Source: Zygnema circumcarinatum SAG 698-1b
Taxonomy: Eukaryota > Plantae > Zygnematophyceae
DNA: 64,000 nucleotides
NCBI GenBank assembly: GCA_037447605.1
Contig: CM074813.1
Location: forward strand, 1,984,001 to 2,048,000
Direction: 5' to 3'
The notes under the pieces were generated by a model. It searched no databases. It had not been told where the DNA came from and was given only the letters and a program-made list of their open reading frames with translations. Shown one piece after another: positions 2,554 to 64,000 of this stretch; within the stretch, counting starts at the first letter, position 1, and the number at the start of each line of letters is the position of its first letter. The position numbers and the translations under genes were made by a program.

Positions 2554-5125
2554 CCCATCCCACGTTTCTTTCTCACCCATCAGACGGCCGTCTTTTCACA
2601 CCTCATGCACACGCATGCGCTTCACCCTGTTGGGTTTGCGAAGGCGTTACAAAATACTTTTTGTTCTGTTATATTGTTTGGTGAGAGTAGATAGAAGGGC
2701 TGGATACAGTGCTAGAATTTCTCTAATATGATTGGTGCAGTGGATGGGAAGGGAATTGAATGGCCGGTTCACTTTTTGTGTTTTGTCCTCCAACTTGGCT
2801 GTTGCTCAGGTGGTGATTTTCAGAGATGGAAAGTATTTGACTCTCAGAGAAGTGTTCGAAAGTCTGGACCTCACAGGGTAGGCCAGCTCTATCTTACTTC
2901 CATTTTTTTTCTAAAAGACCTTTTCGTCAATCAGTCTACCCCTTTGTACTGAAACAACCTAAGGTGTAAGATCAAATTTTGATCTAAGTTCAGACAGCCA
3001 AGAATAGCGAGGTCTTTTCGATAAAATCTAATGTATATATTTTTTTATAATGTCTGGATTGGCGTTGGTCCCTTTTCTGCAATTACTTTCTGCTTGCAGG
3101 TATGACTTGAACGTGGATCTGCTCGATGTGCATGCGGACAAGAACACATTTCATCGATTTGACAAATTTAACCTCAAATATAACCCCTGTGGACAGAGTC
3201 GACTGAGAGAAATTTTCATCAAGCAAGACAACTTGATCCAGGGTATTTCCTTTTCCCGCCTTCTGGCTTAGGGAAGTAGTAACATTGTTACTTCCACCCT
3301 AATTCTCGCCATGAACTACCAGGAGTGGTAGATCTCGGTCATATTGAACGCTTTTGTGTTTGTTGTTGCAGGTCGGTTTTTGGCGGAGCTTACCAAAGAG
3401 GTATTCTCTGATCTGGGGGCTAGCAAGTATCAGGTGAATACGCACACCATGTCAATTCTTTTTGGGATTTCTTTGTATTTTTTTTCTGGGTCGGTTTACG
3501 TATTCGTCTATATTATTTCTCATGCCGACCCTGTTCCTCAGGAGTCGCCCTTTTGGCCGATAAATTATGACTAACTAGTTGACTGCTGGTTTGAACATGG
3601 ACTGACAGATGGCTGAATACCGCATCTCGGTATATGGGCGGACGAAGAGTGAGTGGGATCAGCTGGCATCGTGGATCATAAACAACGACTTGTACAGCGA
3701 AAATGTTGTTTGGCTCATACAGGTGCTACTTCTCGACTTTCTTCAAACACCGAAAACACTAGATAGAGTCTTAACTTGGCAAAAGCTCCCAAAACCCATC
3801 TGCAGCAGACTGCATTCCGCCAATCCACATATAATTCCTTATCCTGCATTCATCTTCCTCCATATGGCTGTTCTATGCTCATTTTGGGTACATTCTGCTG
3901 CTGCAGCTGCCTCGCCTATACAACGTTTATAAGGAAATGGGGATCGTACATTCCTTTCAGAACATACTGGACAATGTGTTTATTCCCCTTTTCGAGGTTA
4001 CTGTGGACCCGTCCACCCACCCTCACCTCCATGTCTTCCTCAACCAAGTAGTGGGCTTTGACATGGTAGATGATGAGAGCAAGCCGGAACGGAGGCCCAC
4101 GAAGCACATGCAAACGCCGGCTCAGTGGGATAATCCATTCAATCCCGCATACTCCTACTGGGCCTACTATGTATACGCCAACCTCTACATTCTGAATAAG
4201 GTGAATTTCACTCCTTATTTGGAAGATTGTCTTACGATGTATTGTTCACATAATCCCTAGAACCGGGGAACTTGAGATTCCCCATCCTTAGGACCTTCTG
4301 ACAAGATTGGCTCGTGGGCGGGTGATGTCCGCCTGCAGCTAAGGGAATCGAAAGGTCTTTCGATAATTAAGTTCCGGCCCCACTCTGGAGAGGTAAGCTT
4401 CTGGGTTGTGCTTCGCGAATGTTCTGTTTCTGTAAGACCTAATGTGAAGTATGCACATTTGCCATGGACCTTATTATCGCTGCGAGGCCGGGCAGGCGGG
4501 CGACATCGACCACTTGGCCGCGACCTTCCTGCTCGCCCACAACATAGCACACGGCAACAACCTGCGCAAGTCCCCTGGTTTGCAGTACCTCTACTACCTC
4601 GCGCAGGTGCGGGAAGAAGAAGTGCTATGAAGAGTGCACACGAGGACAGCAGAGAGTGACGGAGGGCGGGGTGGGGGAGAGTGGGGAGTGGGAAGGGGGT
4701 GATGATGATGGTGAGGCTAGGGAGAAGGGAAAGGAGAGGGAAAATGCAAATTTGGAGAGGGGAGGAGTGTGGGGAAGAGGGAGAGGGAGAGGGGATAAGA
4801 GGGAGAGGAAAATACAAATCTGGGGGAGGCGGTGGGAGGGGAGAAGGAGGAGGGGAGTCATGTTGGAAAGAGAGAGAGTCTAACGCATCTCCCCTTGTGC
4901 TTTTTGTGCTTTCAGATTGGTCTTGCAATGTCGCCACTGAGCAATAATTCGCTATTTCTCGACTACCACCGAAACCCATTTCCCACCTTCTTCTCTCGCG
5001 GTTTGAACATTTCACTCTCTACCGATGATCCCCTCCAGATTCATCTCACCAAGGAGCCGCTCGTGGAGGAGTACTCGATTGCTGCTCAGGTGTGCTCTCT
5101 CCCTTTACTTCTCTCTTTATCGCTC

Positions 5126-7318: not shown

Positions 7319-8641
7319 TTAGCTCGGTGGGCCAGGAAGCAAAAAATTGACGCCGGAATGGAGGCGCTGAAACTCAATGAATGCACAAAAGAACCCCCAG
7401 TCCACGGTTTCGGGCGCAGGCTGACTATCATCTTGGAGATAGATCCCAAGCACCTTCAAGTTAGACTGCCAAGCTAGGAACTGCCCGAGAAGTTTCGCCA
7501 CTGAAGTGTCGAACGTTTGAAACCCCAAATGAAGCTCCTCGAGACTGTTCGATGCCCCACTCGCCTTGCTCGACTCAAATCCTAATTCCGGCAGACGAGC
7601 CGTAATATCCGCACCTATATGGGCAAACTTCAGGTATTCGGACAGGCCAAAAAAATGGTTTAACATTTCAAGCGGGCATGGCGCCTGATTCTCATCTTCC
7701 TGCAGACTCACGTTCTCCAAAACTAGCTTCTTAAGACTTGAACTTTTCGCCAAAAGCGCTCTGACAGGCCCCCACTCCTGCCGCATTGCGTGACTTTCTT
7801 CGCCCCGCAGATAAAGGACTTCCAGCGAGGGCAACTTCTCTTTGTTAATCTGCAAAGAAGTTTCCGACTGTCCTAAAATCTTCAAAACTTTCAAAGCTGC
7901 AGCATCCTCCAGAACCACGTTCCGCGTGTCTCGCAGCTCCAGTTCTCGCAAATTGGGAGCGTTTATCACAATATTTTCAAGTTCCTCCGGGCAGAAATCC
8001 TCCTCCGCTGTTTGAGGGCCCCTGTGCAGCTTCTTCAACGACTGTGAGGACACTACGGGCAGAAATAGTCCCACCACGTTTCCGAGCTGCAAAGTCTCCA
8101 GTCTAGGGCACAGTTTCACCAACCCATCCAACTGGTTATCAGTAACACACAACCCTAACCCTAAACTTAGGGTTTGCAAATTGGCCAGCGGCCGACATTT
8201 CTTGTCCAAATCCTCGTCTTGAATGGTCCCTCCCAGAAGCTCCAGCCTCACCAAGTTCCTGAAAAGCGACAGCTGCCGAATGCGGTGCAAGTCCCACGGA
8301 AACCGGTTGCAGAAATGCAGCGACAAATGCTGCAGAGAAGGAGACGTGTGCATGGCCCAGGCCGCCAGCACGGCTGCGCTGAACGAGGAGTCTGTGAGAG
8401 GGTCCTTGAACTTGAGCACCTCCAAATTCTCACTGTCGAGGACCATCTTCGTGACCACGAGCTCCTCGTCCGCGTCCTCCACGCCCAGGCCGCTCATGTC
8501 GAACACGAGCTCGCGGGCATGGCGGGATGCTTCTGCGAAGGTGCGGGAGACGATGGAGCAGGAGAGAACGTCAGCTGCGGACCCGAGGAAGGAGAGGATG
8601 TGGCTGATCAGGCTCTGCGGGAGGCGCTGAAAGGGGTCCAT
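7319..8641 (-). CDS. Intronless F-box/LRR (RNI-like) protein, At1g67190-like
   Basis: Lies in ORF 7319..8815. Likely start is the ATG at 8641 (MDPFQRLPQSLISHILSFL...CSIVSRTF, an F-box). LRR-like repeats follow, plus FSAAVLAAWAMHT and SSSLKKLVLENV segments resembling At1g67190. The part upstream of 8641 is a (CT) microsatellite. Confidence 0.88.
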   Translation of the reverse strand: MDPFQRLPQSLISHILSFLGSAADVLSCSIVSRTFAEASRHARELVFDMSGLGVEDADEELVVTKMVLDSENLEVLKFKDPLTDSSFSAAVLAAWAMHTSPSLQHLSLHFCNRFPWDLHRIRQLSLFRNLVRLELLGGTIQDEDLDKKCRPLANLQTLSLGLGLCVTDNQLDGLVKLCPRLETLQLGNVVGLFLPVVSSQSLKKLHRGPQTAEEDFCPEELENIVINAPNLRELELRDTRNVVLEDAAALKVLKILGQSETSLQINKEKLPSLEVLYLRGEESHAMRQEWGPVRALLAKSSSLKKLVLENVSLQEDENQAPCPLEMLNHFFGLSEYLKFAHIGADITARLPELGFESSKASGASNSLEELHLGFQTFDTSVAKLLGQFLAWQSNLKVLGIYLQDDSQPAPETVDWGFFCAFIEFQRLHSGVNFLLPGPPS

Positions 8642-9720
8642 GGGAGGCGGAGAGAGGGAGAGGGAGAGGGAGAGGGAGAGGGAGAGCGAATGCTGAAGGG
8701 AGAGCAGAGGGAGCGAGAGGGGGAAGACGGAGGGAGTGCGGGAGGAAGACCAGAGGGGGGAGCGGACCGGCCAAGCCTGTTCGTACAACGTGAAAATTGT
8801 CCCGTTGAAGGGCATCCGTACAGTGTCGACCGTACAAATTTCGACTTCTTCTGTTCCTCGTGGTTTCTAGTTTCGTTTCGTGGTTTTTGGTAATTGGCTT
8901 GTCATGGTTGCGAGGTTTTCTGCTATCCCTGACTTGTCCAATATTTACTTTCGTTTTCGCAGGTCATCTTTTATTGGATTGCATAGCTAGTTTTTTTTTG
9001 TTTTTTTTTTTTTCAATAGCTACTTACTTTCGTCCAATACTCGGTGGCATTTCTCGTTTAAAAGTATTCCCAGCAGAGGTTTCTTAGCCTGGTCGCCTTT
9101 CTTTCTTCTCAGTGCCTTACTTTTTCGCTTTCGATGGCTTTCTGTTTCCCCCAACCTTTTCTCCGCTGGTCTTTATTGTCTTATGGGGAAACCACTGAGA
9201 AAATGGACCCAGAAATCACAAGGCAAAAACAAAAAAAAGGGAACCACACGTGAAATAGAAAAGGACCATCTAGAACTCTTGCATACAAAATCAAGATCAA
9301 TTTAATGAACCTACTTAATATTACAGTGCTAATTTCAATACATCATGTACCACATCTGTACGCAGTAGCACATGAAGCCTCATAGAAACCCGAGATTATA
9401 ATTTCCTTTCCATTGGCCAAACTCTTCTGAACCTTCCACAGCGGAGCCTGAATTTAAGTCATCTCTGGTCGTGGTCGGCCGCACCCTGTAGCTGAAGGCA
9501 GCAAAACGGCAAGGCCGAGGTTCGGTGAGAGAGCTTGGCGCGGCCGGGGGGGGGAGGGGGGGAGGGAGACCGGGAAACCTAAGGAGACCGGGAAAAAATT
9601 TCAAGCTGAGTTTTGGCGTCCTTTCACTGACAGTAGAACGAACATACGGAGGTGAGAGAGCAGCGGGCGAGACAGAGACTGTGAAGGAGAGAGAGAGAGG
9701 AGAGAGGAGAGGGTGGGGGT

Positions 9721-27328: not shown

Positions 27329-30300
27329 ATGATACTCGGTCTTGGAGACTACACATGGCTTCCTCCTTGCCATGGCTTCCTGCAGAAAAGCAGAGACACT
27401 CCTCCCCCGATGAAGGTGGGAGAGAGGAGCGAGCATTTCAAGCTGCAGCACTCGTACGCAAGATGTGCGTTGGAGGAGGGGGAGGCTGGGGAGGTCAGGA
27501 TGGCTTCGAATATTCTAGAGGACATGAATGTATTTCAGTTTGTTGGGAGCGTGCGCCATCTGCAAATGGATGCGTCGACGAGAGAGCTGCACGCGCGAAA
27601 GCATCCAGAAGAGGCTCCTGCTGGGAAGGGGAAGGAGGGGAGATGGAAGGGGAGGAGGTCTCAGGGAGGGAGAGCTGTAGGAGAGGGTGGCAGAAGAGAC
27701 AGCGGGGCTGTTGGACTGGGTGGGACGAAGGACGCGAACGCTCGAGACAATGGCGACTTTTCCAGGTGAGAAGAGATTGGGGTATGGGACGGGAAGAATG
27801 AGAAGATGGGAAGAGAAAAGAGTGAAAGAAGTAGGAGAGAGGCCAAGAGGATAGAGAGAGAGAGAGGAGAGGCAGGAGAGGGGAGTGGTTGTGAAAGGAA
27901 AGGAGCATGGAATTTTAGAGAAAAGTGAGATGGAGAGGACGGAGCAGGCGTGACTAGGTGGACATTGCGGGCGGATTGGAGCCAGGAACGAAGGTAAAAA
28001 AGGAGAGAAGGTTTGGGCAGTGTGGTGGAGAGGAGTGTGGAAAATTGCGTTGTTCAGAGATAGATGAACGAAGGGAAGAGTTTGTGTGTCTGTTAGACAG
28101 TGTGGGGGGGAGAACGAAAAGTAGCAGAAATAGTTTGTTGTAATGGAGCATCAAATAGTCTATCGAGAGTTCAGACTGGCGTATGTGAAGGAGGGCCAGA
28201 GTGAAATTCGTGTCAGTTGAATGTTGAGGTTTGGAATTGCATCCCTCTTTATCTTGGAGCATCCTCCCTGACACCTTTCCGTCCCTCAAACCCGAAAGTC
28301 TCCTGAGGACCCAACACGCCCTGCAGGTTGAAAGCGGGCAGCCGCACCTTCCAGGATACATGTCGCCTTCTGTTGGCGAAATGTGCACGGGAACGGAATT
28401 TGCAACTGGCCCTTTCCGTGTTGAAAGGCCTTCCCCATCCAGACATGCACTGCTACCGAGCCGTCATTGATTTGTGCGGGAAGTGCGGCGCCACAGAGAC
28501 GGCACTCACTGTCTACGAGGTGACAACCCTTATATCTCCTGAAGATCTCTCAAACCTTGCATCTTGTAGCTCTGAAGGAACCTTAGAAGCTTTGGCAGCC
28601 TTGTGAGCACTAAAACCTTTGCAATAATCAATGCACTGGAAAGTGGAAATGGATTTGGTGCATGAGCTGGGCTATTGCACTCTACAAGGTGATGTGATTG
28701 CTGCTAAATGATGTTTAGCTGTTTTCCTTCTTTTGTGGGGTTGGGAGCAGGACATGCTGGACGCTGGTGTGTCACCGAATGTGTTTGTGTACAACAGTTT
28801 GATGAATGTCCTCGTGCGCGACTGGGAGGCGGTGTGGGAGGTGTATGGCCACATGAGGGTCCGCACTGTTCCTTGCTTAGTTTAATGGAACGAAGTTAAA
28901 TGTGAAGTGTGAGCATGTGTTCAGTCAGAGGCTTCAGAGTTGTTCCCGGTGTGGAGATTGTGGAGCACAGGGAACCAAGAAAGGTCTAAGTCTTGTGTAC
29001 ATCCTTTCGGATGCTTTCACATACTCGCGAACACTCCTGCTCCTGCTCCTACTCCTACACCCACGTGTCTCACTTCTTTCCTTCAAGTCTCCCCCACGTT
29101 ACCCTCCTGCTATTCCTCCTAGTTCTGCTCCTCTCTGTCCTACTGCGACTACCTGACGAGTGAGGCTGAGGGGTGCAAAGCGGGATTAAGGAAGCGAGAA
29201 CACAGTCGCACACCCCAAAGCACTTCCCAAAGTCATCTTTACCCTCGCCCCTCTCTCCGACAGTGCAGCCACTGGGATACGGCAGCCCCCTCGCTCCTAT
29301 GTCTTCCCTCTCCTCCTTTGTCACTTTCCCCTCCGTACCCCTAAGAACCTTCAGAAACCTAAACCCCTGCAAGCCCCGCGTTCTGGCAGGCTGCAAGAGT
29401 GGAGCCGGACACCGCCTCCTTTGGCGTCCTCTTGAAGGCGTGTGCTCGCGCTGGGAGAACGCGAATGGCTGCTCGCATCTACCGCGATATGAAGAGGTGG
29501 GCAGCGGCAAGGGGCGGAGCACTGGATGTCATCTCCTACAGCTCTGTCATCCAGGTGGTGTCTGAACTCTGGAAGTTGAGGACATCTCTCGCAATCACTC
29601 TGACTTCCTGGTTCATTTCTTCCCTTATCTGTCAGTCAATCTCGCTGTTTTTTCTCACAGACTCACTCTTCATCTGCCCTCTCAAGCCATCTCTCAACTG
29701 CCCTTCCCGCCTCGTCCTTTCCTTTTCCGATTTACATCATTCTCCCACCTCCTGGCTTCCTGTTTTCCTTGCTTCCCCTCGCAGGTTCTTGTTGTTCAAA
29801 ATTTTGCATATAAAGAGGTGTCATGTGCTGCCAAAGACACAAGTGGGAATGCGGCTCCTATAGCCTTGAAACCACCTGAAACCATGGAATTCGAAAATCC
29901 CCTCAAAACCATAAAACTTCGAGATTTTTTCCTATGATCCTGTGTATTCTTAAAACCCGAAATTTTGAAACCATAAATAACCATCGGTTCTGAAAAGCGA
30001 TGTGGCAGGTCCTCGCCGAAGCGAAGGATTGGCAGGCAGCCCTTTCAGTGAAGGACGACATGGAGGCTGCGGGAGTAGAGCCGAATGTGGTGACATGGAC
30101 CTCTTTGATTCGAGCTTGTGGCAAGGCAGGATTGGTGGAACAGGCATTCCAGCTATTTGAGGAAATGCTGTTGGCTGAAACGGAACCAAACACTTTTACA
30201 TATAATACGCTTATAGATGCGTGCGCAGAAGCGGGCCAAGAGGAGCGAGCATTCGCTCTGCTGGAGGAGATGAAACGGGGGGGAAGGGGGAGGGAGGGGG

Positions 30301-33300
30301 GGAGGGCGAGGAAGGAGGAGAGCGTGGGAGGGGGGAGAAAGGGAAGAGGATGCAAAAATGTGGAGAGATCAACGGGAGGGGTGGAGAGTGTAGATGCTCG
30401 GATAGAGGGCGATTATGTCGAACTCGCTACCTCAAGTGTAAACCTAAATGAGGAGGGAGCAGGTCCTTTTCAAAGGCAAGAAGGGGAGGATCATTTTCCT
30501 GCTCTCTCCTTAGCAGCAGGTGTGCCCGTATGGTCCATGGAAGGAGATACGTTAGAGAGTCAGGATGGTCGTAGGAATGGGTTGAGAGAAGGCAGAAAGA
30601 ATTGCTCTCCAAACGAGGTGACGTACAATACATTGATGAAAGCATGCGGTGGATCTCCAAAGAGGGCAATGGCTCTCATGGAGGAGATGAAAGAATTAGG
30701 GTTACAGCCCAACCAGAAGAGCTGGTCGGCTTTACTAGACGCACATGGGACCTGCGGAGATCTGGCAGGGGCACTGCAGGTCTCTCTCTCCCTCTCCCTC
30801 TCCCTCTCCACCTCCCCCCTCCCTCATGACGTTAGTTGTACTTCTGCAAACTGAGATGCCAAAGGTACTGCCGGTCTTGCAGGTGTTTGAAGATATGCAA
30901 GAGCACGGGGTGCCTGCCGATGTGGTGACCTATACTGCTCTCATTAAGGTATTGATCCTCGTCCAATTTTTCGTCCAACTGCCTTAGATGTAATAACCAG
31001 AATGCTTAGAAATTGAAAATACTTTAAATTCTACAGTAGTGTACTCTAAAATTTGAACGCATTAACTGTTAAAAACTCTAAAAACGTAGTTGGGGTGTCA
31101 GGCTTGTGTTAGAGGAGGAGATGAAGATAAGGCTTACGACTTCCTGGACGAGATGAAGGCGGCTGGTGTTCGACCGAATCTGGTATGACAGAATGTGCAG
31201 ATTCTTGTGATTGCGATAGCTTACAGAAGAAGCTTCTCCTGTTTATGATTTTATGCTGAGGAATTTTGCATGCCTGAAGAGAAGAATCAGCTTTTTCGGT
31301 CCAGGTGACATACACCACTCTGCTTCGGCAGCCCCCTGGAGGCGGAGGGCTCCGAAGGGTTCAGCGAGCCCTGAATCTCTACCACGATATGCGTGCTGCA
31401 GGGTACAGCATGGCTCTCACTCCTTTTAGGATTTCTATTGGGGTTTCCTGCCATTATATAAGCTATCAGGTCCTCCAGAGCTTTATGGACTCCCTGATGC
31501 CATTTTTTGGACCTTTTGGGGTCACTAAGACTATCTCTCAGGAGGAGTGTTTGCAGAAGTTTTGAGGGTTAAAGGTATTCTAAGTGGCTGTTGCTGTATC
31601 GCTTCCATTGGTTCTGCTGATTTCAGAACTTAGGGCCTTTGTCTGCTTTGCTGCAGGTATGCGGCCAACGACCACCTTTTTAAAGGCCTTCTGGAGGAGT
31701 GGGCTGAAGGGGCCTTGCATGGCAATGCTCCGGGACAGAGGCAGGCGCAGCCTCTCTCTGAGAGGGCAGATTTTGGGTCACTCTATGAGTGGGGGGGGGA
31801 GAGAAGCGGTAGCGCTCTTGAAATTACGGAACGGCTCTTGGAAACCGTAGCACGGCACGACCATAGAACCCCAGCGGAGGATCTTCTTTCTGTTAACCTG
31901 CAGGGCCTGTCCAAGGTGCGGGGAGAGATTTAGAGTGTGGTGTATTGTGGTTTTCATAGGATTTTGGGTTATTTTGTATTCTTTTGGATTTTTCAGTTTT
32001 TTGGGGCTATTGGGGTTTGACTGTTGGAAAATGGTGAAGAAAGGTAGCAAACAGAGTGAATCTACTTTCAGAGGTACGGCAAAAGGACAATAAATTGGTT
32101 AGAAATCAACTAATGGTAACTGCTAACAGAAAGATGTTCTAAGCAGACATAAGTTGGGGAGATTGTAAGCAGGCGGAGGCTCGCACTGCGACTCTTTCTG
32201 TTCTTCGAATATTAAAGGAGCGCCACAAAAGTGGTGAGTTTTCTTCTTCTCAATGAAGCTCATGATCTCTCCACGCCACTCTCCTCTGTTACTCGCACTC
32301 TTTTCCTCCCCATTTCCTGACTTCTTTCTCTCTCCTTACCCTCTCTGTCTTCACTGCCATTTGTCTCGTCCTACTTGTTCCCACTCCCTTTCCTATTCTT
32401 TTCTCTTTCTCATGTCTGAGTGTCCCTCTCGCCTAATCCTTTTCCTGCCTCTCGTTTGGTTTCTCCCCCCCTCTCGTCATCCCCTTCTTCCCTCTCACTC
32501 GTCAACCCACTCGCCTGTTTCACCCCTCAGGCTTGTTTCTTTCTTCTTCCCTTCCCCCCCTCCTTCACGCTCACCTCTTGATTCTGTCTTCCTCGCGTTT
32601 TCCCTTTCTACCTCCTCCCATTCCCCGTGTCTCCCCTCTCACTCCCACGTCTCCCTTCCCCTGCTCACTCCCTTCCAATCCTCCTCATCCCCGCCTCCCC
32701 CTCTCGCCCCATTGTTTTTCCTCTGTCGCTCTGCTTTGGCATCTGCATTACATTTCAGCAATGCAGATTGAATTAGAATTATAAGCATATTTAGTATGCT
32801 AATACATGAGAGAGAGATGGGGAGAAAGAATATAAATGTACAGTATTTCACAGGTCGGACCATTAGATCGGCAACCATTGGACAACCCTTGGATGGCAAT
32901 GGTCGGACGTCCAATGGTTTGCAACCATTCATTCAAACGGTTGCCAGCCATTGGCATCCAATGGTTCTGAACCATTCGAATGTTTGTTTGGGTCCGGCGC
33001 CAATGGTTGCCAACCATTCGAATGGTTGGTCCAATGGTCCGACCTGTGAAAACTTTTAGGATTTCCAAAGTCGGTCTGCCGTCTGCCGTGTCAGCACGTG
33101 ATTCGTTCGAAACTTTGAACTTGTAGTAAAATTTCACAGGTTGGATCGGCAACCATTGGAGAACCGTTGGACGTCCAATGGTTCCGAACCAATCAAATGG
33201 TTGTTTGGGTCCGGCGCCAATGGTCCGGAACCATTTGAATGGTTGCCAACCATTGGCATCCAATGGTTCCGAACAATTCGAATGGTTGTTTCGGTCTGGC

Positions 33301-37700: not shown

Positions 37701-40700
37701 GTTTGTATATACTCAAAATTTTAGTTTACAAATATTCCTCAAAGTTCAAGTTCATTTAACAACAAACGAAATCGAATGAACAAAAAGAAACTGCAAAAAC
37801 GGTCTTGTAGCCGTGTCTTTTACCATGGCAGATATCCACTCTGAGATGTCGCGACTCAGATGCTTAATGTTTACAGGCCAAAGCAAGGTAAAGTAGAGAA
37901 CTCTGACTCACCGAGTCTAGCTCAAAACCCCTCTCTTTCATCTCCAAAAAGACAGCTTCTGCCTCCTCCACCTTCCCCAAATGGCCATACAAATCCATCA
38001 CCATATTTAAGGTGCCTTTTGAGGGTCGGTTTCCATCCGCCTTCATCGCAGCCAGGGCAGTCTCCACCCCTTCCAAATCCTTCCTATAGAAATGGTACGC
38101 AATTATTGACCTCCAAGTAATGTCGTCTAAGGCAATGTTTGCCTCATGCAACTCCTGAACATCAACTCCAACACCAAGGGTAAGAGCACCTTCACAATAA
38201 CCAACTAGTCCCAACAAACAAGTGAATTGGCATGAATCTCTTGAATGCTTGAAAAGAAGCAGCACCTTGGCAATCTGCAGCATCTCCTTTGGCATGGGGT
38301 GCTGCTTGTGGTAGCCTTGCATGAGGCCCCTAAGCTGCCATGCGGAGGGCTGCCATCCCATGGCTCTGAGGTCCATTAGGGTTTGGTCGACGGCTGCCCA
38401 CTGATCTATGGAGCACGAGCATGCTCTCAACACTGCGTCTATGAAAGCCTGCGCAGCTCCAACCCGCCTGTGTTTAGGAAGGGAGGAAAGGGAAGAACGG
38501 GAAAAAAGGGGGAGGATGGGAATGGGTGGAAGGGAGGGGAAGGTGAAGGGGGAGGGAGGGGGGGATAGGCGGAAGAAATTAAGAGGTGGCAAGAGGTTAG
38601 AATTTTGCGAGAAGGGGGGGGGAGAGGGGGAGGGGGAGGGGGAGGAGGAGACAGCAGGCTAACCTGATCCGGCATCACACCTGCAGACCGCATGTCTGCC
38701 AGAACAGACGCCACAGTTTCCATGCGTTGGCCTCGCCCAAAAGTCATCACTAAGTTCGCATAGGTGCGCAAGTTTGGTGGAGGTCCTGATTCCTGGAGAG
38801 GACCCATCATGCCCGGAAAAAGAATGTTTTTTTTCATGAAGCGAGCGAGCGATAAAGAAACAGGTGGAACGCATGACATGACGCATGTTAAAACACGTTC
38901 ACTTCAGTCGCCAATCACTGTATTCATGTCTTCCTCTAACAGTAAGAAAATGCTCCAGGTTTTAGGCTCATATTTTAAGTAAGGAAGCCTCACGCACCTT
39001 AAGCTCCCCATATAGTTGAGTCACATCATCAAGCATGAGTTCTGAGCCCAGCGAGCGGAGAAGATTGTTGTATAGAGCGATGTCCGGCCGTACTCCCCTC
39101 GCATTCATCTCATGAAGGAGCCCCACTGCCTCCTCCATGCGCTGTGCCGCTCCGTAGATCCCCACCATGATAGTGTATGTGATCACAGTCACCGAGGCGT
39201 CATATTCTGTACAACCGGATGGGTAAAGGGGGATCTCCATGTTTCAGAACCTTTTTGAAATGAATTCTCGCGTCTTGTATGGTGAAGTATGCAGCCAATG
39301 TTAACGTCAGGAAGTAGGTGGAAAAAGTTTCCCATAAGTTAACGAAAAACACTGAAGTTGAAAGCTGTTCTGTTCAAAATTGTATTTGTGAGTTACTAAT
39401 ACTATTCCTTCAAAACGGAAAGGAGACAACTGGAGAGAGTGAGAGGGAGGAAGTGTGAGAGGTAGAAGGAAAGAGGCTGACCATGGCGACGAGTAATCCA
39501 CTGGAAAAGCTCACTTGCAGCATCCACATTTCCTGTGAGCCCAAATGTTCTCAATGCAGCGTGGAATGTGAATATATCCATAGGCACATTCAGCTCCTCC
39601 ATTTCCCGCAATAGCCTCAGGGCTTTGTCGTGAAGCCCAGCCTTCAAGTACATATTTAACATTGAGTTGTATGGTGGGGTGAACCTGCGCAGCAGAATTA
39701 TATAAGCACCTTCTTCCCCTTCTTCAAACTACAACAAAAACCAAACCGTTAACTACATTTTTTTCAGAACACCACCAGATGGAAAACGTTTGTCCTTTTT
39801 GCATCTCGTTAAAGCTATTGAAGCGAATGAGGATTCAGATAGGGTTCTCTGAGTAGGATTACACCAACTGGTGGGTTTACCCCATATCAAGATATCCACT
39901 CACTTAATCCCTTGCGTATTCATCTGAACGAGAACCCTTTCCGCCGATGCTACCACCTTCAGAGAGGCTTCCCCGGTGTCTTGCGATTTCTGCAGCCCTG
40001 TCATCAAAGTCGTAAAGGCCTTCACTCCAGGCATTACTCCAAGACCCACCATTCGATCGAACGTAGTCAGGGCTAAGTCCACCTGCTTGGCCCTGACTTG
40101 CCCTAAGATGACAACTTCATATACAGAATCGCTTGGTAGTTGACTGCTGCTCTCAACCTGCTCCAAAATGGAGTCCACAACTCCCCACTGTTCGGCATCT
40201 CCAAGAATGCGGAACACATTTGCAAGAGCATCCATGTTTTCCCTTTCCATTCCATTCTGCTGCATCCACTGGAATATCTCTAAAGCTTTTTGCCAATCCT
40301 GCAGAACCCAGACGCCATCACGGGTGAGCGTAAGGGCAAGAGTCTGGGGTGGGCTGCGGAAAGGGAGAGCTTAGAGTTCGGGTGAGCGTTCGAACATCAG
40401 TCACAGTCAATCAAAGTGAAAATTAGGACAAGGCTAGGATCAAGACTCTGAGCTTGGCTCGAAACGATGTTAGAGATAAACGGTTATTGCCCGAGGGGCA
40501 AAATTCTGATAACTTAAACCGGAAAAAGTAATGAAGTTCATTCTGTATAATCCACAGAGAAAGGTCATAATAGAAACAAACCGTGCTTAAACTTCAACAT
40601 CATAATTTACTACAAACAACAACAAAAATAAATCAAATATACTCTTACATGCATAGCCTTTGATCTTCAGACTGAGAGAACAGCCCAAACCCTAAAAATC

Positions 40701-49458: not shown

Positions 49459-51111
49459 TCACAGAGCGAGTTTTAAATTCAAGTCTACCCTCTGCCTTGC
49501 CCTCCCATTTCGCAGCGCTTCGCCTTCTGGTAAGCGCGCATCGGCCTCAAGTTGCGCAGCAGCGCTGCTCTGCTCCTCCGCCAGCCTCCGCAGAATCTCC
49601 TGCGCGAGCCAAGTCTTCTTGCTAAGGCCTTTCGCACTCGGAGGAGAGCCTGACTCCTTCACTGGACGTTCGGTTTCTGTTAGCAGCAGGGGAGGCTCGC
49701 TACCGCGGCCTGTGGATGTGGGAGAAAGGAATGATTGGGAGGGGAGAGTGGTAGTGGTAGAGGGAAGGGAGGAGGGAGAGGAGGACGGTGCCGCTTTAGG
49801 GAAGGCCTTTCCATGGCAGCCACTCAAAACCCTCGTGGAGCGGCACGGCACAGAAAAGAAGTTACAGTACTGCCCGCAGCATGGTTCTATGGCAGACATC
49901 AATTTTCCGTCCCTGCTGACTGTTCCTTGATGCTGCTGCTGGTGGAATGCAAGGAACGGCACAGAAAGGCCGTCCAGGCTGCCGCCCAGATGCTTCATTT
50001 CAGCTCCTCCAGTCGTGGACATCCCTTCACCGCCGCTGCTTTGGGCAGAAACTGGCACGAGGCTGGGAGAAAACCCACTGTTGGGATCCTGTTTTGGCCC
50101 TGCTGAAACTCCCCAGCTTTGAACCTCCCTCTCTCTCTCCCTCTCCCTCTCCCTCTCATTCTCTTTCTCCCTGATCTTGCTCGTCTTTCCTCGCGGTCTC
50201 CTTTTCCCCGCCGTGCTTCTGTGCGGGAGATCCGGGTGCACGCCCTTCAGTTCCCTGTGCCCGTTTCTATGTCCGCCGAGCGCCTGCACAGTTGGAAACC
50301 GCATGCCGCAGATGGAACATGCGTGCGGCCCCGCCCCGGCGTGCCAGCTGGTGACTGACGTGGCAGACGAGGGCGCCGAGCTGGCAGCCGCAGAGCGCAG
50401 CAGCTCTGCCACGTGTCTCGGCGCCGCCCCGGCCTCGAGCGGCAGCGAGACGGCCTTCTCCGTACCTTCGCGCAGCAGCGCGGCCCGCCACGAGGGGACG
50501 GAGGAGAGGCTGAAGAGGGTGTCGCTGAGGGAGCGCTGAGGAAGCTGCCGCGCACCTTCCGGGGCCACGGTGGAGGTGGTGGAATTGCTGAGGTTGGGAC
50601 ACGTGTTGCTGCGCTCCGGGTCGGGGAGGGCGAGGGGCTGCCATCGGGAGGAGGAGGAGGGGGCGGCCATGGAGTCAGGGGAGGACCGCGAGGCCGCCAT
50701 AGATCCGGAGACTGCGGTGACAGAAGAGCGGCTGGTGCTGCCACCTGGCGCCTGCAGAAGCCAAGCCCGCCCAGAGGGCGCGGTGCAGATGTCGAGGATG
50801 GAGGGGCACGAGGCGTGGGGCGCTGCCACGTGTACACTGTGGCTGGGCTCGGAGTCTCCAGAAATGGCGCCATATAAGGCGCCTTCCTGCTCGCCTTCCC
50901 TCTCCCAGTCCCTCTCTCTGCTGCGAGTGGGAGCAGCGGGGACAGCCGCAAGCGTGCCGGCGCGCCACTCTTGCGCCTCCTCCAGGCGGCCGCGCTTCGC
51001 CTGCCGCTCTTCAGAGGATCGCTTCCGGGCGCGGGGCCGCGATTCAGAGGGCGGCCCGGAAAAGGAGTCCATGGAGGCAGCGACCGCCACCGCCGCATTG
51101 CGCTGGCACAT
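49459..51111 (-). CDS. Intronless single C2H2 zinc-finger repressor (QALGGH type) with C-terminal EAR motif
   Basis: ORF 49459..51336 contains HACSICGMRFPTVQALGGHRNGH and ends VDLNLKLAL* (EAR DLNxxL/LxLxL). Likely start is 51111 or 51072. The upstream part of the ORF is (SP)n microsatellite. Confidence 0.88.
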   Translation of the reverse strand: MCQRNAAVAVAASMDSFSGPPSESRPRARKRSSEERQAKRGRLEEAQEWRAGTLAAVPAAPTRSRERDWEREGEQEGALYGAISGDSEPSHSVHVAAPHASCPSILDICTAPSGRAWLLQAPGGSTSRSSVTAVSGSMAASRSSPDSMAAPSSSSRWQPLALPDPERSNTCPNLSNSTTSTVAPEGARQLPQRSLSDTLFSLSSVPSWRAALLREGTEKAVSLPLEAGAAPRHVAELLRSAAASSAPSSATSVTSWHAGAGPHACSICGMRFPTVQALGGHRNGHRELKGVHPDLPHRSTAGKRRPRGKTSKIREKENEREREREREREVQSWGVSAGPKQDPNSGFSPSLVPVSAQSSGGEGMSTTGGAEMKHLGGSLDGLSVPFLAFHQQQHQGTVSRDGKLMSAIEPCCGQYCNFFSVPCRSTRVLSGCHGKAFPKAAPSSSPSSLPSTTTTLPSQSFLSPTSTGRGSEPPLLLTETERPVKESGSPPSAKGLSKKTWLAQEILRRLAEEQSSAAAQLEADARLPEGEALRNGRARQRVDLNLKLAL

Positions 51112-52827
51112 AGCGGACAGGCCTCTCTCCCTTCCGCTGACCCGCACCCGCGCCCTCTCTCGACCCCTACGCCCCTCTGACCCTCTGACCCTCCTTCCCT
51201 CCCACCCTCTGCCTCTCCCGCCCACTCCCAGCGTCGTTGCCCTACGGAGAGAGGCGGAGGCAGAGAGAGAAGGCGAGGGAGAGGGAGAGGGAGAGGGTGA
51301 GGGAGATGGAGAGGGCGAGGGCGAGGACGAGGCCAATCAGGGGAGGGGCGTTGGGCATGAGGCGCGAGGCCCGCAAGTGCGAAAGGGGACGCATCCCGCA
51401 CGTGCGACGGAGGGCACCGAGTGGCGGACGGGTCATGACGTGGCGCGCGATTCTTCTCGAAAGAGCCGCCGATTTGCTGCGGCGGTCGGCGCGTGCCACT
51501 GGGGCCGCGGCGACCGCGGGGGCACGGGCGGGCGGGCGTACGGCCGAAGACGGGGCCGGGAAACGCGGGGGACGCGTGGGGGGAAGGAGGCCGTCGGATG
51601 CGATGGGGACGTGGGCAGCCAGGACAAAAACGTCTCGAAATTAGGGTAGGCGGATTTTTGCACGCCAGCGCATCACGTCGCGACAAGAATCGTCATTGGC
51701 TGGCCGGCCCGCCCGGCGCGGCGCGGCGCGCTACGCGACAAGCGGGCGGACAGCGGGCGGGCAGGGGAGGCCGAACAGTACGGCCTGGCAGTCTTGGGAA
51801 AAGCCGGGCGGGGCTGGGCGGGGGAGGGGCTGCGGAACTAGTACTCTGCATTCGGTTTTATAATTTCTACTGCGGGAAGCTCGTATTGATTTTGAATTTT
51901 TCATTTCTTTATTTTCCCAGTTCCCTTTTCAAGATTGCAAAACCCCCGGCGGAATACATGTAATTCTGTGGCCGGATAATAATAAGTTACTGTTTGGCGG
52001 GGAGCGGCCGGCGGGGCTCTCTCCGCGCGCCACGTCTCGCGAGGGCGAGGGGCAACGTGGCGCGCGGAGAGCGGTGTCGGCGGGGGCAGCGGCCAATCGC
52101 GGACGCGCAAAAAGGGGACGGCGAGGCGGCACCGACCGAAAAGCGCATTGGAAAAGGGGGCATGGTCGCGACAAAATGTCGTTCTTTGAATTCTGGCGCG
52201 ACAAAAGGCGGTGCTCGTACGGCCAGATGCGACCCGTAGGTGCCAACGTGGCGTACGGCCTCGGCTACATAAAGACTGGGCTGCGAATGCAGCCAAGGAC
52301 CGTACGCCTCGATGATGCGGATGGCAGGATCTGAGGATCGGATACGATCCTAGCGATCCGATCCTTGTCGGCACGCGTACTGATTGGGCGGCCCGAGGGC
52401 TCGGTCAAGCAGGCCAAATCCGCCAGCTGGCGCACCCACAGTGGCCGCGAGAGCCGGGGAGCCCAGGCGCCCAATCGCATCATTTGCCGCAATTCGCTCG
52501 CGCGAAGCGACGAGGCGGGCGGGCGGGCGGGCGAGCGGGCGGGCGTTGTCAACTAGCCCGCGGGGTGCCCAGGAGGCGCCACGCGGCGCGGCGTACGGAG
52601 GCCAGAGTCAACGCGGGCGGCAGATCCGTACGGCGCAGGCGGCATTGATGGCCGCGCCCGCCAGGTCAAAAAGCGAACGCCCGAACGTTGCCGCGGGCCG
52701 CGGGGACGTTTCGTTTCGGGCTGGCGGGGGAGGCCGCCGGGCGGGCAGGGCTCCCCGCAGGGCGGGGAGGGGACTACTGTACCGTGAAACCGAACAGATT
52801 GAGAAATTGAGACACGAGTTTACTTAA

Positions 52828-58630: not shown

Positions 58631-59110
58631 CAATACCCCCCCTTATTTTCGCCATAGTAGGGGGTGTCAGACTTAAAAATTGTTCGTAAGTTTGAGACCA
58701 GAACGAGTACTTCGGTGACATCACAATCCTGGTGCGGCGGAGTACTTACAAAACTATTTTGTTCGTAAGTTTTCGTTAAGTCTGACACCCCCTAGTTTCG
58801 GCAAATACTGGGCGAAAATATTGGAATTTGCAAATATAAGGTCCGTGTTACCAATAGGCGAGCGGTATTATGTTAGAGTTCATGTATGTCCGTATGTATC
58901 GTATCGTATCGTTTGTTTTCGTATCGTACCTCATCGTACCGTATCGGCTAATAAGGCTGGTACTGCTAATACGGATATTACCGTATCGAACGTATCGTAT
59001 CGCATCTCATCGCATCGCATCGTATCGTGCCGTATCCATGAACAAGTGGAGAAGAACAAGCGCCTCTTACGGCGGCACGTGCGGGGAAATTCGGTGAGTT
59101 TTGCTAAGGG
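58631..59110 (+). mobile_element. Family-A-like left end and subterminal block
   Basis: ta|CAATACCCCCCCTTATTTTCGCC start. About 58810-59100 aligns with 24840-25070 (GGCGAAAATATTG...GTGTTACCAATAGGCG...GAGCGCCTCTTACGGCGGCACGTGCGGG-like blocks). Confidence 0.75.
58659..58793. mobile_element. Second copy of the Harbinger-like MITE (135 bp, opposite orientation)
   Basis: Same TIR, with TSD AGT. The interior is the reverse complement of the 42.0 kb copy. Inserted in a family-A-like left end. Confidence 0.9.
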
Positions 59111-60051
59111 TGGGTTTCCATCAGCCCGTTTCGTAAAGCGCTCGTTACGGTCCACGTAGGATGCCGTTTTCAAATGGAACGACGAGTTCCATCAGAACGC
59201 CGTTGGCCAGCGTGGCAGTCGCACGCTGGCGGATCTTTGGTATCCACGTGGCGGCACGCGAATGGTTGTAATGGCGTTACACCACCTCCGGAGCAGCATT
59301 CTGTGCACCGGCTGCAGCGAGGCTCCCCCCCTCCCCACCGTCGATCGCCACGATCGGAATTGCTGCAGCTCCCCGCCCCCCGGCCGCCCACCCGCCCTGC
59401 AGCGTCCTCCCAGGTACGGCGCAGCGCCCGAGCGGGCGACGCCGGCCGAGCGCGCGGTCACCGCGGTGCCGATTGCCACGTAGATGCCNNNNNNNNNNCT
59501 TGCCCACCGCCCATTGAAATTGAACATCGTGTCCTGGTACCGGTAGGTCTAGAGTTCGATCTCTGCTGGAGGCGTGTTTGCTACACAGCCCGAGCGAGCG
59601 AGGGAGGCCCTGCTTGCTTGCGGAGAGCGGTGTGTGGCGGCCGCGCCCCCCCCCCCCCCTTACACATTACCACCGCATGTGTTGCAGGTACGCCTCTATC
59701 CATCTTTCTGCATTCTGCATTCTGCTTTCAGCATTCTGCATTCTGCATTCTGCATTCTCCATCTTTTTTTCTATCCATCCATTTATGCAGCGTCGTTTAC
59801 TTAACTCTTTCATATATTGTAGAAATGGATCCAAGAATTCCTCATCTCTATCCTCATCATCTAGGGTTGAGTCCAGAAGACGAAGCGTGGAGCGTATTTG
59901 ATGATGCCTCTTATCTAGTGAAGAAGAATGGATGTATTATAGGGAATGAAGAGCTTAAAAAGGACAATATTTTGCAGCGGAAGCGACAATTGAAGATGAG
60001 AAGAGAGAGGAACAAAGACGCGACATGCCTATAAAGCCAAGGTATGCTATT

Positions 60052-61657
60052 GGCTTTCTGCTTTCTGCTTTTCACTTTCTGCTTTCTGCTCTGTGCTTTC
60101 TGCTTTTTGCTTTTGGCTTTCTACTTTCTGCTTTTTGCTTTTGCTTTCTGCATTCTGCTTTCTGCTTTCTGCTTTTTGCATTCTGCATTCTGCATTCTGC
60201 ATCTTGCATTCTGCATTCTGCATTCTGCATTTTGCTTTCTGCATTCTGCATTCTGGATTCTGCATTCTGCATTCTGCATTCTGCATTCTACATTCTGCAG
60301 TCTACATTCTACATTCTGCTGTTGGCTTTCTGCAATCTACATTCTACATTCTGCTGTTGGCTTTCTGCTTTCTGCATTCTGCATTCTGCATTTTGCATTT
60401 GGCATTTGGCATTCTGTATTCTGCATTCTGCATTCTGCATTCTGCATTCTGCATTCTGCATTCTGCATTCTGCATTCTGCATTCTGCATTGTGCATTTTG
60501 CATTATGCATTATGCATTTTGCATTTTGCATTTTGCATTCTGCATTTTGCATTCTGCATTCTGCATTCTGCATTCTGCATTCTGCATTCTGCATTCTGCA
60601 TTTTGCATTCTGCATTGAGCATTGAGCATTGAGCATTGAGCATTGAGCATTGAGCATTGAGCATTGAGCATTCTATATTCTGCATTCTGCATTCTGCATT
60701 CTGCATTCTGCATTCTGCATTCTGCATTCTGCATTCTGCATTCTGCATTCTGCATTCTGCATTCTGCATTTTGCATTCTGCATTCTGCATTCTGCATTCT
60801 GCATTCTGCATTCTGCATTCTGCATTCTGCATTCTGCATTCTGCATTGAGCATTGAGCATTCTATATTCTGCATTCTGCATTCTGCATTCTGCTTTTGGC
60901 TTTCTGCATTCTGCAATCCGTATTCTGTATTCTGCATTCTGCATTCTGCATTTTGCATTCTGCATTCTGCATTCTGCATTCTGCATTCTGCATTCTGCAT
61001 TTTGCATTCTGCATTCTGCATTCTGCATTCATTCTGCATTCTGCATTCTGCATTCTGCATTCTGCATTCTGCATTCTGCATTCTGCATTCTGCATTCTGC
61101 ATTCTTCTGCATTCTGCATTCTGCATTCTGCATTCTGCATTCTACATTCTGCATTCTGCATTCTGTATTCTGCTGTTCTGCAATCTGTATTCTGCATTCT
61201 GCATTCTGCATTCTGCATTCTGCATTTTGCATTCTGCATTCTTTGAGCATTGAGCATTGAGCATTGAGCATTGAGCATTGAGCATTGAGCATTGAGCATT
61301 CTATATTCTGCATTCTGCATTCTGCATTCTGCATTCTGCATTCTGCATTCTGCATTCTGCATTCTGCATTCTGCATTCTGCATTCTGCATTCTGCATTCT
61401 GCATTCTGCATTCTGCATTCTGCATTCTGCATTCTGCATTCTGCATTCTGCATTCTGCATTCTGCATTCTGCATTCTGCATTGAGCATTGAGCATTGAGC
61501 ATTGAGCATTGAGCATTGAGCATTGAGCATTGAGCATTCTATATTCTGCATTCTGCATTCTGCATTCTGCATTCTGCATTCTGCATTCTGCATTCTGCAT
61601 TCTGCATTCTGCATTCTACATTCTGCATTCTGCATTCTGCATTCTGCGTTTTCTGCT
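60052..61657. repeat. 1.6-kb heptamer satellite (TTCTGCA)n with TTGAGCA blocks and CTTTCTG-type edges
   Basis: Directly visible, over 200 units. Blocks of (TTGAGCA)n-TTCTATA occur at about 60614, 60845, 61243 and 61481. Confidence 0.99.
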
Positions 61658-62124
61658 TTTCTTTCAAATTAGGTACATTTTATGTCACTCTTTTTGAAGA
61701 ATTATTGAATTAAGGGTTTTCTTTCTGTTTTTGTGCAGGGCAACTACAGCTCAAAGCCAATTATTAGTTTCTGGGGTAGAGAGGTTACGCCCAAAATCTA
61801 CGAAGGCATCATACCGCCCCGTAATAAAGCAATTTGTTGCTAAGTGTGAAACAGAGGGTTGGAGGCCAATTCCACATTCAGAAAGAGTGGCAGCATTTTT
61901 GTTTTGGAGATTAGACAATGGCACTATGAATGCAGGTCCTTTAACCCCCAGCACTTTGTCTAATAGTATTTTTGCATTGCAACATGCCCAAAAAACTATT
62001 GATTTTATAACACATGATCCTGTATCTTTGGGTGTAAAAGTGAGTGTTAGCTGCAAAATTAGTATATGGTGGAGATCATGGCCCTTCTACCGATGAAAAG
62101 GCGACTTAGGCAAGTTATCTTTTG

Positions 62125-62460
62125 CTACGCTTTCGCGTTCGTATTACGTTGACATTGGCGTTTTAGATTGCAAAAATTTGCGTTACAGATTACGCGTTCT
62201 GGCATACGCGTTCTGGAGTTACCGTTCTGCGTTAGCGTTTTGTATTTTCGCGTTACTGCGTTACGCATTTGCAATCACGTATTACGCGTTTTTAGTTACG
62301 TGATGCATTTCGTTAAGATTCTGCGTCTGGCGTTAGCGTTACTGCGTTACTGCGTTACGCGTTTTGTGTGTGCGTTTTGCGTTCTGGGTGCGTTACTGCG
62401 TTGCGTCTTTGCGGTGCGGGTGCGTTTTGGGTGCGTTCTGGCGTTACGCGTTAGCGTTGT
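62125..62460. repeat. Degenerate GCGTT-core repeat array inside a Crypton intron
   Basis: Units GCGTTAC, GCGTTCT, GCGTTTT and GCGTTAG recur between donor 62040 (gtgagt) and acceptor 62578. Confidence 0.85.
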
Positions 62461-64000
62461 TTCGAACGACACTATAACCACTCTTGGCGCGTCTCGCCTG
62501 CTCACTCGCCTGCGCTCTCCCCCACTCCCCCCTCACTATCACTCCCTACAAATGTCTTTTAGTTTTTTGTGTCTACAGGATGTTCATTGATCCTAAACGA
62601 GGGACTGTTAAGTATAAACTAGCGCTTTCAGACTTTCAAAAGTTAATTAAGGTATGGGGTCATTCAACAACGAAACATATTTAAAGTATGGTAGTATGGT
62701 AGCTACAGCAAAAGCAATGATGCTTTGAGGAGATGACCCGAAAGGGTGGTCGGTTGGTCGGTCATTTATTGATGATATGTTCCTGACGGTATTGTGTCGA
62801 GATGTCTTGTGCAGGTGTGTGGTCAATAAGTGGGAGAAAGCTGGGAGGGGCTTACGGTCAAGTATGGAACTCACTTTGTTGTTCGGATCCGAATTTTTCT
62901 TGATGCGTGGATGGATATCGCGATATTTGTTCCTTGAGGTTGGGTGTATGTGAGAAGGAGCACTCCTCTCGGATGCTTGAGACAGCTACACTTTGGTGAT
63001 ACAAGAAACATCGATCAGTATTATTATTTGTGTATTTTTGTTTTATATTTTTACTTGTGAATGTATTGTTTCGTTTTATTGGCCAACGTTGTTTGTTGTT
63101 GATTTCTTGAGGAGTCCTGAAACACTTATTGTTTCCGTCAAAGCTCAGCTGAGGTTGAAATGTGTAGTGAAGCCTTGTCGAAGTTAAGTAGAAAAAAATG
63201 GGTGGCTTGGCTTAGATACCAGTTGTTCGGGGAACGCTGCGCGTATTAGTGGCTGGCAAACGAGGGAATGTTTACGTGGCATGGCTGCTTGTGGGTTTGA
63301 TCAAATCCAGGTGGCAGGGAGGTGGGGCCCAGCTTCAAATAAATCCCTTGCAATCAATTACCTTTCTTCGATTGTCCCTCCAGTCTGTAGGGTGCTTGCA
63401 GGATTCAAAAAAGAAGGCGATGATTATTTTTTGGAGCGTTCTTGTCTTAAACCAAATGAAGCGCTTGTGAATATGGTTTTCAAGATTTCTTCCGGAACGC
63501 TTGAAGGCCCCTAACATGCAGCGAGGTAATGACATATAAATACTGCGTGGATCTTTTTAGGTACGGAAATGAGAGAAAGAGGTGTGAAAAGAGATTGAGA
63601 GGGGAGGGGGAAAAGGGTTAGCGTTATGTGTTTTTATGTGTAGGTTCTTCCGTGGAGTGCACTTTTTAAGTCCCGGAATCTTTTGGTGAGGAGGCTTTGT
63701 GGGCATCTTGCGTTATTTTCGTGTGTTTATTGCAAGATGATGCATCGTTCGTTCCATAAATTCCATTGTTCGCGAGATAAATCCCGTTCTTCCAGCCCGG
63801 TGGCAGTAAGGTATGAGTATCAAGGTTATTCACTAGCTTTTTTTTGTTCTTGGCCACTTTTTTGACTGCTGCTTGGTGCTCACTTTCTCTGCTTACCAGC
63901 TGGCTGGCTGTAACTCTACATTTTAAATTTGTTTTCTTATTGTTGAGAAAACACTGCTACAGCTGCTGTTGCTACTGCTGCTATGTTTTCTGCTGCGACT

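Follow-up and report, generated by a model that had tools for sequence, protein, structure and literature searches.

Relic of a probable Crypton-class tyrosine-recombinase gene with introns in the streptophyte alga Zygnema circumcarinatum

Our analysis concerned a stretch of 64,000 nucleotides (nt) of Zygnema circumcarinatum SAG 698-1b (GenBank assembly GCA_037447605.1, contig CM074813.1, positions 1,984,001 to 2,048,000), here called the window, whose last part (59825-64000, plus strand) is very probably a decayed, intron-containing copy of a Crypton-class transposon gene of the CryptonF/NDC10_II type. The relic is the 5′ three quarters of the gene, and the rest is cut off by the window end at 64000. 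An earlier reading of the letters (the original prediction) had placed a tyrosine-recombinase (YR) transposon here on the strength of a series of peptide strings, all of which we found as plus-strand translations where it had put them. The parts of the gene are listed below; the paralogues are contigs assembled from public sequencing runs, and L002 and L005 are metagenome contigs carrying relatives of the gene.

59825..60041, plus strand: exon 1, N-terminal region, broken; ATG at 59825, YLVKKNG at 59912-59932
60042..61738, plus strand: intron 1, GT..AG, phase 2, nearly all (TTCTGCA)n satellite
61739..62032, plus strand: exon 2, core-binding-like N-terminal domain, frame intact
62033..62578, plus strand: intron 2, with a phase-2 donor GG/GTGTAA, or GTGAGT at 62040
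62579..63525, plus strand: large exon of the catalytic domain, badly broken; traced by alignment to L005 and, for its Tyr-box part, by profile and phmmer
63526..63643, plus strand: intron 3, GTAATG...TGTAG, placed as in L002, after FPWLEEKEAAVKE
63644..63810, plus strand: exon with a relic of the ...LRxxLLQD...HP(I/F)F... helix region, assigned by position and conservation among paralogues
63938..64000, plus strand: start of an Ala/Thr-rich exon, cut by the window end, with TATAAVATAA at 63953-63982

The identity of the gene was established through its relatives. In an exhaustive phmmer search of 1.84 billion proteins, the Tyr-box piece (63188-63511) had eight matches at E<=1e-3, among them P0002 (E 3.4e-6) and P0003 (E 4.6e-6). 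Two of the eight (P0001 and P0006) are repeat proteins, and the remaining six have GRW..YL..AGF..L.R in common with the window piece. Four of these six non-repetitive matches contain the Pfam domain NDC10_II at E<=3e-4 (P0002, 2.6e-26; P0003, 3.2e-26; P0004; P0008), and the domain is faint in P0005 (0.013) and P0007 (0.082). Further relatives that match NDC10_II are P0012 (2.9e-31) and the middle one of three collinear pieces on contig L005 (3.5e-12). Six relatives, without the window, were combined in a profile that gave 113 bits for the joined window model, 68.6 bits for the Tyr-box piece, and 36.9 bits (E 2e-10) for the N-terminal piece, compared with 5.5 bits for the best of 2000 shuffles; in a three-frame scan, the same profile saw only the N-terminal and Tyr-box parts. 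The N-terminal piece, FIDPKRGTV, and the Tyr-box piece are also collinear with contig L002 (tblastn E 1.3e-9, 1e-3, and 2.6e-11, respectively). The core-binding helix that the original prediction had recognized is exon 2, reading RPKSTKASY (61788-61814)...RPIPHSERVAAF...STLSNSIFAL (61950-61979), and both this helix and the predicted Tyr box are borne out by these scores. The prediction would have fallen had no profile of Ndc10 or Crypton recombinases matched; relatives do match NDC10_II, P0002 and P0003 at about 3e-26, and the recombinase domain of the window gene is thus homologous to CryptonF/NDC10_II transitively, via these relatives.

Upstream of the Tyr box, part of the catalytic domain could be followed with a frameshift-aware protein-to-DNA alignment of the L005 middle region to 62586-62948 (score 134, z ~25; shuffles with mean 31, standard deviation 4, and maximum 44). 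This alignment requires frame changes at 62653, 62798, 62856, 62890, and 62936 and one stop, and it identifies 62579-63525 as one exon with frameshifts rather than several spliced segments. The original prediction had spoken of scattered spliced segments throughout, a description that fails for the pieces inside this exon. The motifs of the exon are as follows.

62583-62609, plus strand: FIDPKRGTV
62681-62737, plus strand: the true Arg box, LKYGSMV..MML*GDD (asterisk, stop), from the L005 alignment
62823-62843 and 62857-62877, plus strand: Lys hairpin, SISGRKL (frame 3) followed by VKYGTHF (frame 1), from the L005 alignment
62849-62863 and 62897-62911, plus strand: GLRSS and FLMRG, the strings of the Arg box as first predicted
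62897-62932, plus strand: helix FLMRG..SRYLF (frame 2); relatives read ...ARYLFFRF after the hairpin
63233-63244, plus strand: NAAR, replacing HxxR
63314-63325, plus strand: AGRW of the Tyr box (GRW at 63317-63325)
63356-63367, plus strand: NYLS of the Tyr box, with the Tyr codon at 63359-63361
63395-63406, plus strand: LAGF of the Tyr box
63425-63439, plus strand: YFLER of the Tyr box

The Arg box had thus been misplaced in the original prediction. The score of GLR...FLMRG in its frame is reached by 49 of 500 shuffles, and the DNA that encodes it is the region of the Lys hairpin and the next helix, read in shifting frames. A clue to the true map is that after 62779 a paralogue reads a ...TAIGPSEC-like peptide, which in the relatives stands just before the Lys hairpin. 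A single frame with three stops over 62816-63511 was also considered and rejected for 62816-62948, where the profile and three-frame scans are blank, as the shifting frames explain.

Three lesions of the exon fall on catalytic residues. The codon of the first catalytic Arg, part of RGDD or RGE in the relatives, is TGA (62726-62728); in place of the catalytic Lys stands Arg (SGRKL compared with GK.N in the relatives), and in place of the catalytic His stands Asn (NAAR). Arg II, Trp, and Tyr are kept. The catalytic set R-K-H-R-(H/W)-Y, intact in the spliced model of the L002 gene, is therefore incomplete in the window copy: the family qualifies as Crypton, and the window copy is a relic. Within the exon, about 260 nt (62949-63208) gave no alignment to any of the four relatives tried; the family varies most in this stretch, where L002 has an intron. 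Past the Tyr box, the frame shifts after VNMVF (63481), near 63482, and FLPERLK follows in the next frame up to the donor at 63525/63526. Over the whole relic, at least six frame changes and at least five stop codons were counted.

Exon 1 and the exon after the catalytic domain are damaged as well. The frame of the exon 1 ATG stops at a TAA 8 nt before the donor at 60041/60042, and this donor needs the other frame (MPIKPR, 60025-60042), so that a frame change is needed somewhere from about 59962 to 60041, the A5 run near 59957-59961 being a possible site. Exon 1 aligned to the N-terminus of the L002 model with a score of 47 in frameshift-aware alignment (shuffles: mean 26, maximum 45). In the exon at 63644-63810, LLQDD (63727-63741) is followed by PLF and PFF with in-frame TAA codons at 63757 and 63778; the frame changes near 63704-63738, and there is an extra stop at 63667. 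The LQD..PLF..PFF motif of the original prediction is hence present as a string from 63727 on and is not significant alone. With short queries, neither the LLQD exon nor the Tyr-box tail was significant against the relatives (shuffles, frameshift-aware alignment), and the assignment of the motif is by its position and conservation among paralogues. The Ala/Thr-rich exon start at 63938-64000 is identical in paralogue contigs.

Relatives with surrounding DNA were found in metagenomes. On contig L001, the gene of P0002 (NDC10_II) is directly followed by a GCR1_C gene. A complete element with NDC10_II and GCR1_C occupies L001:1-4420; the last 123 nt of the contig repeat its first 123 nt exactly, so that the unit measures 4297 nt. 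The same genes stand in another rotation in a second assembly, which together with the self-overlap indicates a circular or tandem Crypton; the organism of L001 has 33% G+C. Contigs L002-L004, from three Joint Genome Institute (JGI) metagenome samples, carry an intron-rich relative gene (L002:391-4600, the same in L003 and L004) whose host is likely an alga. It is apparently intact, with about nine introns, 54% G+C, all catalytic residues, and a GCR1_C-like tail. The spliced L002 model, its splice sites placed from the sequence only, is open over 513 residues and carries RGDD, GKRNQ, HAFRPSG, GRW, and SYL. Downstream of it lie an Ala-rich stretch and an open reading frame (ORF) at 4256-4600 that matches GCR1_C at E 0.004, below the cutoff of Pfam. 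In both L001 (P0002) and L002, a Ser/Thr/Ala-rich linker stands between recombinase and GCR1_C. Neither reverse transcriptase (RT) nor RNase H is on record for the relatives' contigs L001-L008.

Parts of the stretch were also found in 20 public runs from eight studies, all with one species label (word shares up to 0.19). Contigs from these runs placed on 61650-64000 show 87-100% identity in patches, with unlike letters of similar length between them, as expected for paralogues, and dispersed copies are thus repeated in the host genome. The X1 and X20 contigs have C at 62726, which gives CGA (Arg), and a net gain of 1 nt at 62646-62652, which removes the frameshift at 62653. The X6 contig keeps T at 62726, and the stop is therefore not peculiar to this assembly. 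Around 63703-63738, differences in the X1, X3, and X20 contigs produce, in our reading, one open frame ...LRYFACVLLQDASFV..., with DHPFFQREE later on. Paralogues are accordingly free of at least three lesions of the window copy (the 62653 frameshift, the 62726 stop, and the frame changes at 63704-63738). In the X20 and X6 contigs, 61739 follows directly on 60041, the X3 contig retains the 3′ end of intron 1, and the X20 contig is about 108 nt shorter than those of X1 and X3 across intron 3; the exact joins and the shorter intron 3 region fit spliced RNA, the kinds of the runs being guesses. The family is multi-copy with a plant-lineage algal host, and the copy at 59825-64000 is dead.

The introns are themselves unusual in content. 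A (TTCTGCA)n satellite of about 225 copies (60077-61647, about 1.6 kb; Tandem Repeats Finder) nearly fills intron 1. Blocks of a CATTGAG variant occur within it at about 60615-60670, 60845-60860, 61245-61290, and 61480-61535, and a short array of the TTCTGCA heptamer lies upstream of the ATG (59706-59762). In position and phase, intron 1 appears to be the same as a predicted 72-nt intron of L002, recognized by GT..AG alone and itself unproven, since that stretch is in frame and free of stops. Intron 2 agrees in position and phase (2) with the L002 intron before (E/M)(Y/F)(V/I)DP. No evidence emerged for the horizontal acquisition that the original prediction had thought possible; the seemingly shared positions point, if anything, to long residence in intron-rich hosts. 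The 3′ part of intron 2 (62111-62578) is a self-contained 468-nt unit of the form AG/GCAAGT...ACAG/G with GCGTTAC-like repeats, and directly before it lies a short GT..AG intron (62033/62040-62110). This unit is exactly lacking in the X20 and X6 contigs, which skip about 62112-62579; in the X3 paralogue, a TTCTGCT-type satellite takes its place after 62123, the first 13 nt being shared. An introner-like insertion, a piece removed by recursive splicing, and a simple indel that distinguishes the copies are all candidate explanations of this unit. It is conceivable, though we regard it as doubtful, that a streptophyte or green algal lineage has the CryptonF-like family as a native and still active component and that the early introns of the family are introner-like or recursively spliced heptamer-satellite units rather than ordinary introns, such units being self-contained, of the form AG/GT(or GC)...AG/G, and found in some copies while missing exactly from others.

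Among eukaryotic DNA transposons, Cryptons form a rare class with a patchy distribution, and CryptonF elements of fungi and oomycetes were reportedly described by Goodwin et al. in 2003. NDC10_II is the recombinase-derived fold of yeast Ndc10. CryptonF elements combine a YR with GCR1_C, yeast Ndc10 is derived from them, and fungi and oomycetes are the only hosts from which the group, with its domesticated offspring Ndc10 and Gcr1, has been described (Kojima and Jurka 2011, PMC3212892). Like CryptonF, the window gene has, via its relatives, an NDC10_II-type recombinase with the C-terminal signature GRW...YL...AGF...L.R; it has introns and no RT, no long terminal inverted repeats were seen, and the order of YR followed by GCR1_C is found in the relative L001. 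Unlike CryptonF, its host is a plant-lineage alga, the relatives found are metagenomic eukaryotes, and it has more introns, some filled with satellite, in a copy that is dead and cut by the window end. The CryptonF/Ndc10-type reading follows from three observations: true sequence relationship is seen with NDC10_II proteins alone; among relatives with DNA, the nearest have the CryptonF layout of NDC10_II followed by GCR1_C (L001, and weakly L002); and RT and RNase H were not found nearby, neither in the large ORFs of the window nor in the 8 kb upstream. As far as 64000, the unit therefore resembles a DNA transposon in lacking these enzymes, and the many stops and frameshifts mark it as a decayed copy. 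The central proposal of the original prediction, a decayed CryptonF/Ndc10-type YR element with introns, is upheld by the same observations.

The protein of the family would comprise, in order, a short N-terminal region, a core-binding-like helical domain, a YR catalytic domain, an Ala/Thr-rich linker, and a GCR1_C DNA-binding domain, the plan from the linker to GCR1_C being drawn from the relatives. If the family follows the published Crypton model, DNA cutting and rejoining by an intact member would pass through a covalent 3′-phosphotyrosine intermediate, and the element would be excised as a circle and then re-integrate site-specifically at a short sequence matching its ends. The copy at 59825-64000 cannot yield a recombinase protein because of the TGA at the Arg I codon, the Lys to Arg and His to Asn changes, its frame changes and further stops, and the 260 nt beyond recognition.

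Several points weigh against this assignment. No window piece reaches any Pfam family or any PDB chain, which makes the family assignment transitive: five window ORF pieces had no Pfam match even at E 10, so that the profile comparison suggested in the original prediction succeeds for the relatives and fails for the pieces themselves. A PDB sequence search with the two main pieces, a seven-row profile, and the relative P0012 returned nothing relevant, and no direct sequence match to the PDB chains of Ndc10 was obtained. The AlphaFold model of the Tyr-box piece from the seven-row alignment is too poor for use (pLDDT, the predicted local distance difference test, of 55). The 3′ part, with the expected GCR1_C domain, lies beyond the window end. 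Assembly errors may account for some indels, and whether the public runs are DNA or RNA was guessed. Other searches were also blank. A word-indexed protein search gave no match for the Tyr-box or N-terminal piece and found one relative with P0003, the length window and word index being probably responsible; a single-protein metagenome scan for related loci revealed no relative; an exact look-up of a 77-residue window ORF gave no record; and no second copy was detected within the 64-kb window by tblastn or blastn. The feature neighbours of exon 2 include Phage_int_SAM_1 and QRICH1 clusters, a lead only.

It is improbable that the copy is intact or nearly so, a live Crypton gene whose frameshifts and stops are errors of the assembly consensus. 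The frame change in exon 1 may fall at the A5 run, and paralogue contigs are open where the window copy is broken. However, several of the lesions (TGA for CGA, Lys to Arg, His to Asn, and the TAA codons) are substitutions and not indels, and the X6 contig, independently, shows T at 62726 together with an indel at 62652 that breaks the frame. The divergence from the paralogues, moreover, is patchy by segment (87% to 100%) and not even, as sequencing error would be, and 260 nt cannot be aligned at all.

Domestication offers another account, in which the locus is no transposon relic and instead a catalytically dead, Crypton-derived host gene for an Ndc10/Gcr1-like DNA-binding protein. The same Pfam fold families as in Ndc10/Cbf2 domain II and Gcr1 (PF16787 and PF12550) occur in the relatives of the window gene, three catalytic positions are altered in the window copy, which has lost catalytic residues as Ndc10 has, and its intron positions are seemingly shared with L002. 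Ndc10, on the other hand, is a conserved, open, single-copy host gene, whereas this locus belongs to a multi-copy family with many diverged paralogues. No open frame has been kept in it, and with its frame broken at least six times and stopped at least five, no protein of the NDC10_II fold is possible from it. We consider domestication very unlikely.

The window gene shares with the DIRS1/Ngaro/PAT retrotransposons, which are known in green algae, a eukaryotic YR with a core-binding-like N-terminal domain. Those elements, in contrast, carry RT/RNase H (some also a methyltransferase) in the same unit, of which none was found in the window or the relatives' contigs, and unlike their recombinases, the relatives of the window gene match NDC10_II. 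Least probable of all is that the locus encodes a DIRS/Ngaro-type retroelement recombinase or is a fungal or oomycete contaminant scaffolded across the 10-N gap at 59489-59498. In its favour, the ATG stands 327 nt downstream of that gap, CryptonF has only fungi and oomycetes as described hosts (PMC3212892), and the exons have 41-43% G+C against 49% in the window. Against it, no adjacent RT-RNase H frame was found in the window, the relatives are not of DIRS type, the paralogues come from eight studies with one species label, and satellites of the heptamer type in the introns recur in other parts of the window. Both a DIRS/Ngaro recombinase next to RT-RNase H and fungal contamination of the contig end had been named in the original prediction as grounds for abandoning it; the former was not found, and the latter is unfounded given the plant-type genes of the window (below) and the paralogues.

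In a literature search, no report of Cryptons in green algae or streptophytes was found, which is not proof of absence; the Crypton-class family would on this basis add a new host to a kind of element already known. The window locus by itself is ordinary. That a plant-lineage alga has a CryptonF-like family with multiple copies and many introns, and that environmental eukaryotes have intron-bearing relatives of it, suggests a wider host range and bears on the cause of the patchy distribution of Cryptons, that is, old vertical inheritance or transfer. The value of the locus lies in a dated, dead copy and a corrected motif map with the true Arg box and Lys hairpin.

The large ORFs elsewhere in the window are of plant type, with F-box/leucine-rich repeat (LRR; At5g56370 type) and pentatricopeptide repeat (PPR) proteins and a C2H2 finger, a gene content consistent with a streptophyte. 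The F-box/LRR and PPR repeat ORFs, which support a plant-lineage nuclear origin of the window, lie at the following positions.

7319-8815, minus strand: plant-type F-box/LRR (At5g56370-like) or PPR repeat ORF
30000-30854, plus strand: ORF of the same group
37864-38592, minus strand: ORF of the same group

Degenerate TCGCATC/CGTATCG heptamer repeats occur at 58870-59030, upstream of the 10-N gap, and heptamer microsatellites with several different repeat sequences are apparently frequent in this genome. An island of 66% G+C at 49459-51700 contains long overlapping ORFs on both strands, one of which (49459-51336, minus strand) encodes a C2H2 zinc finger (zf-C2H2_6).

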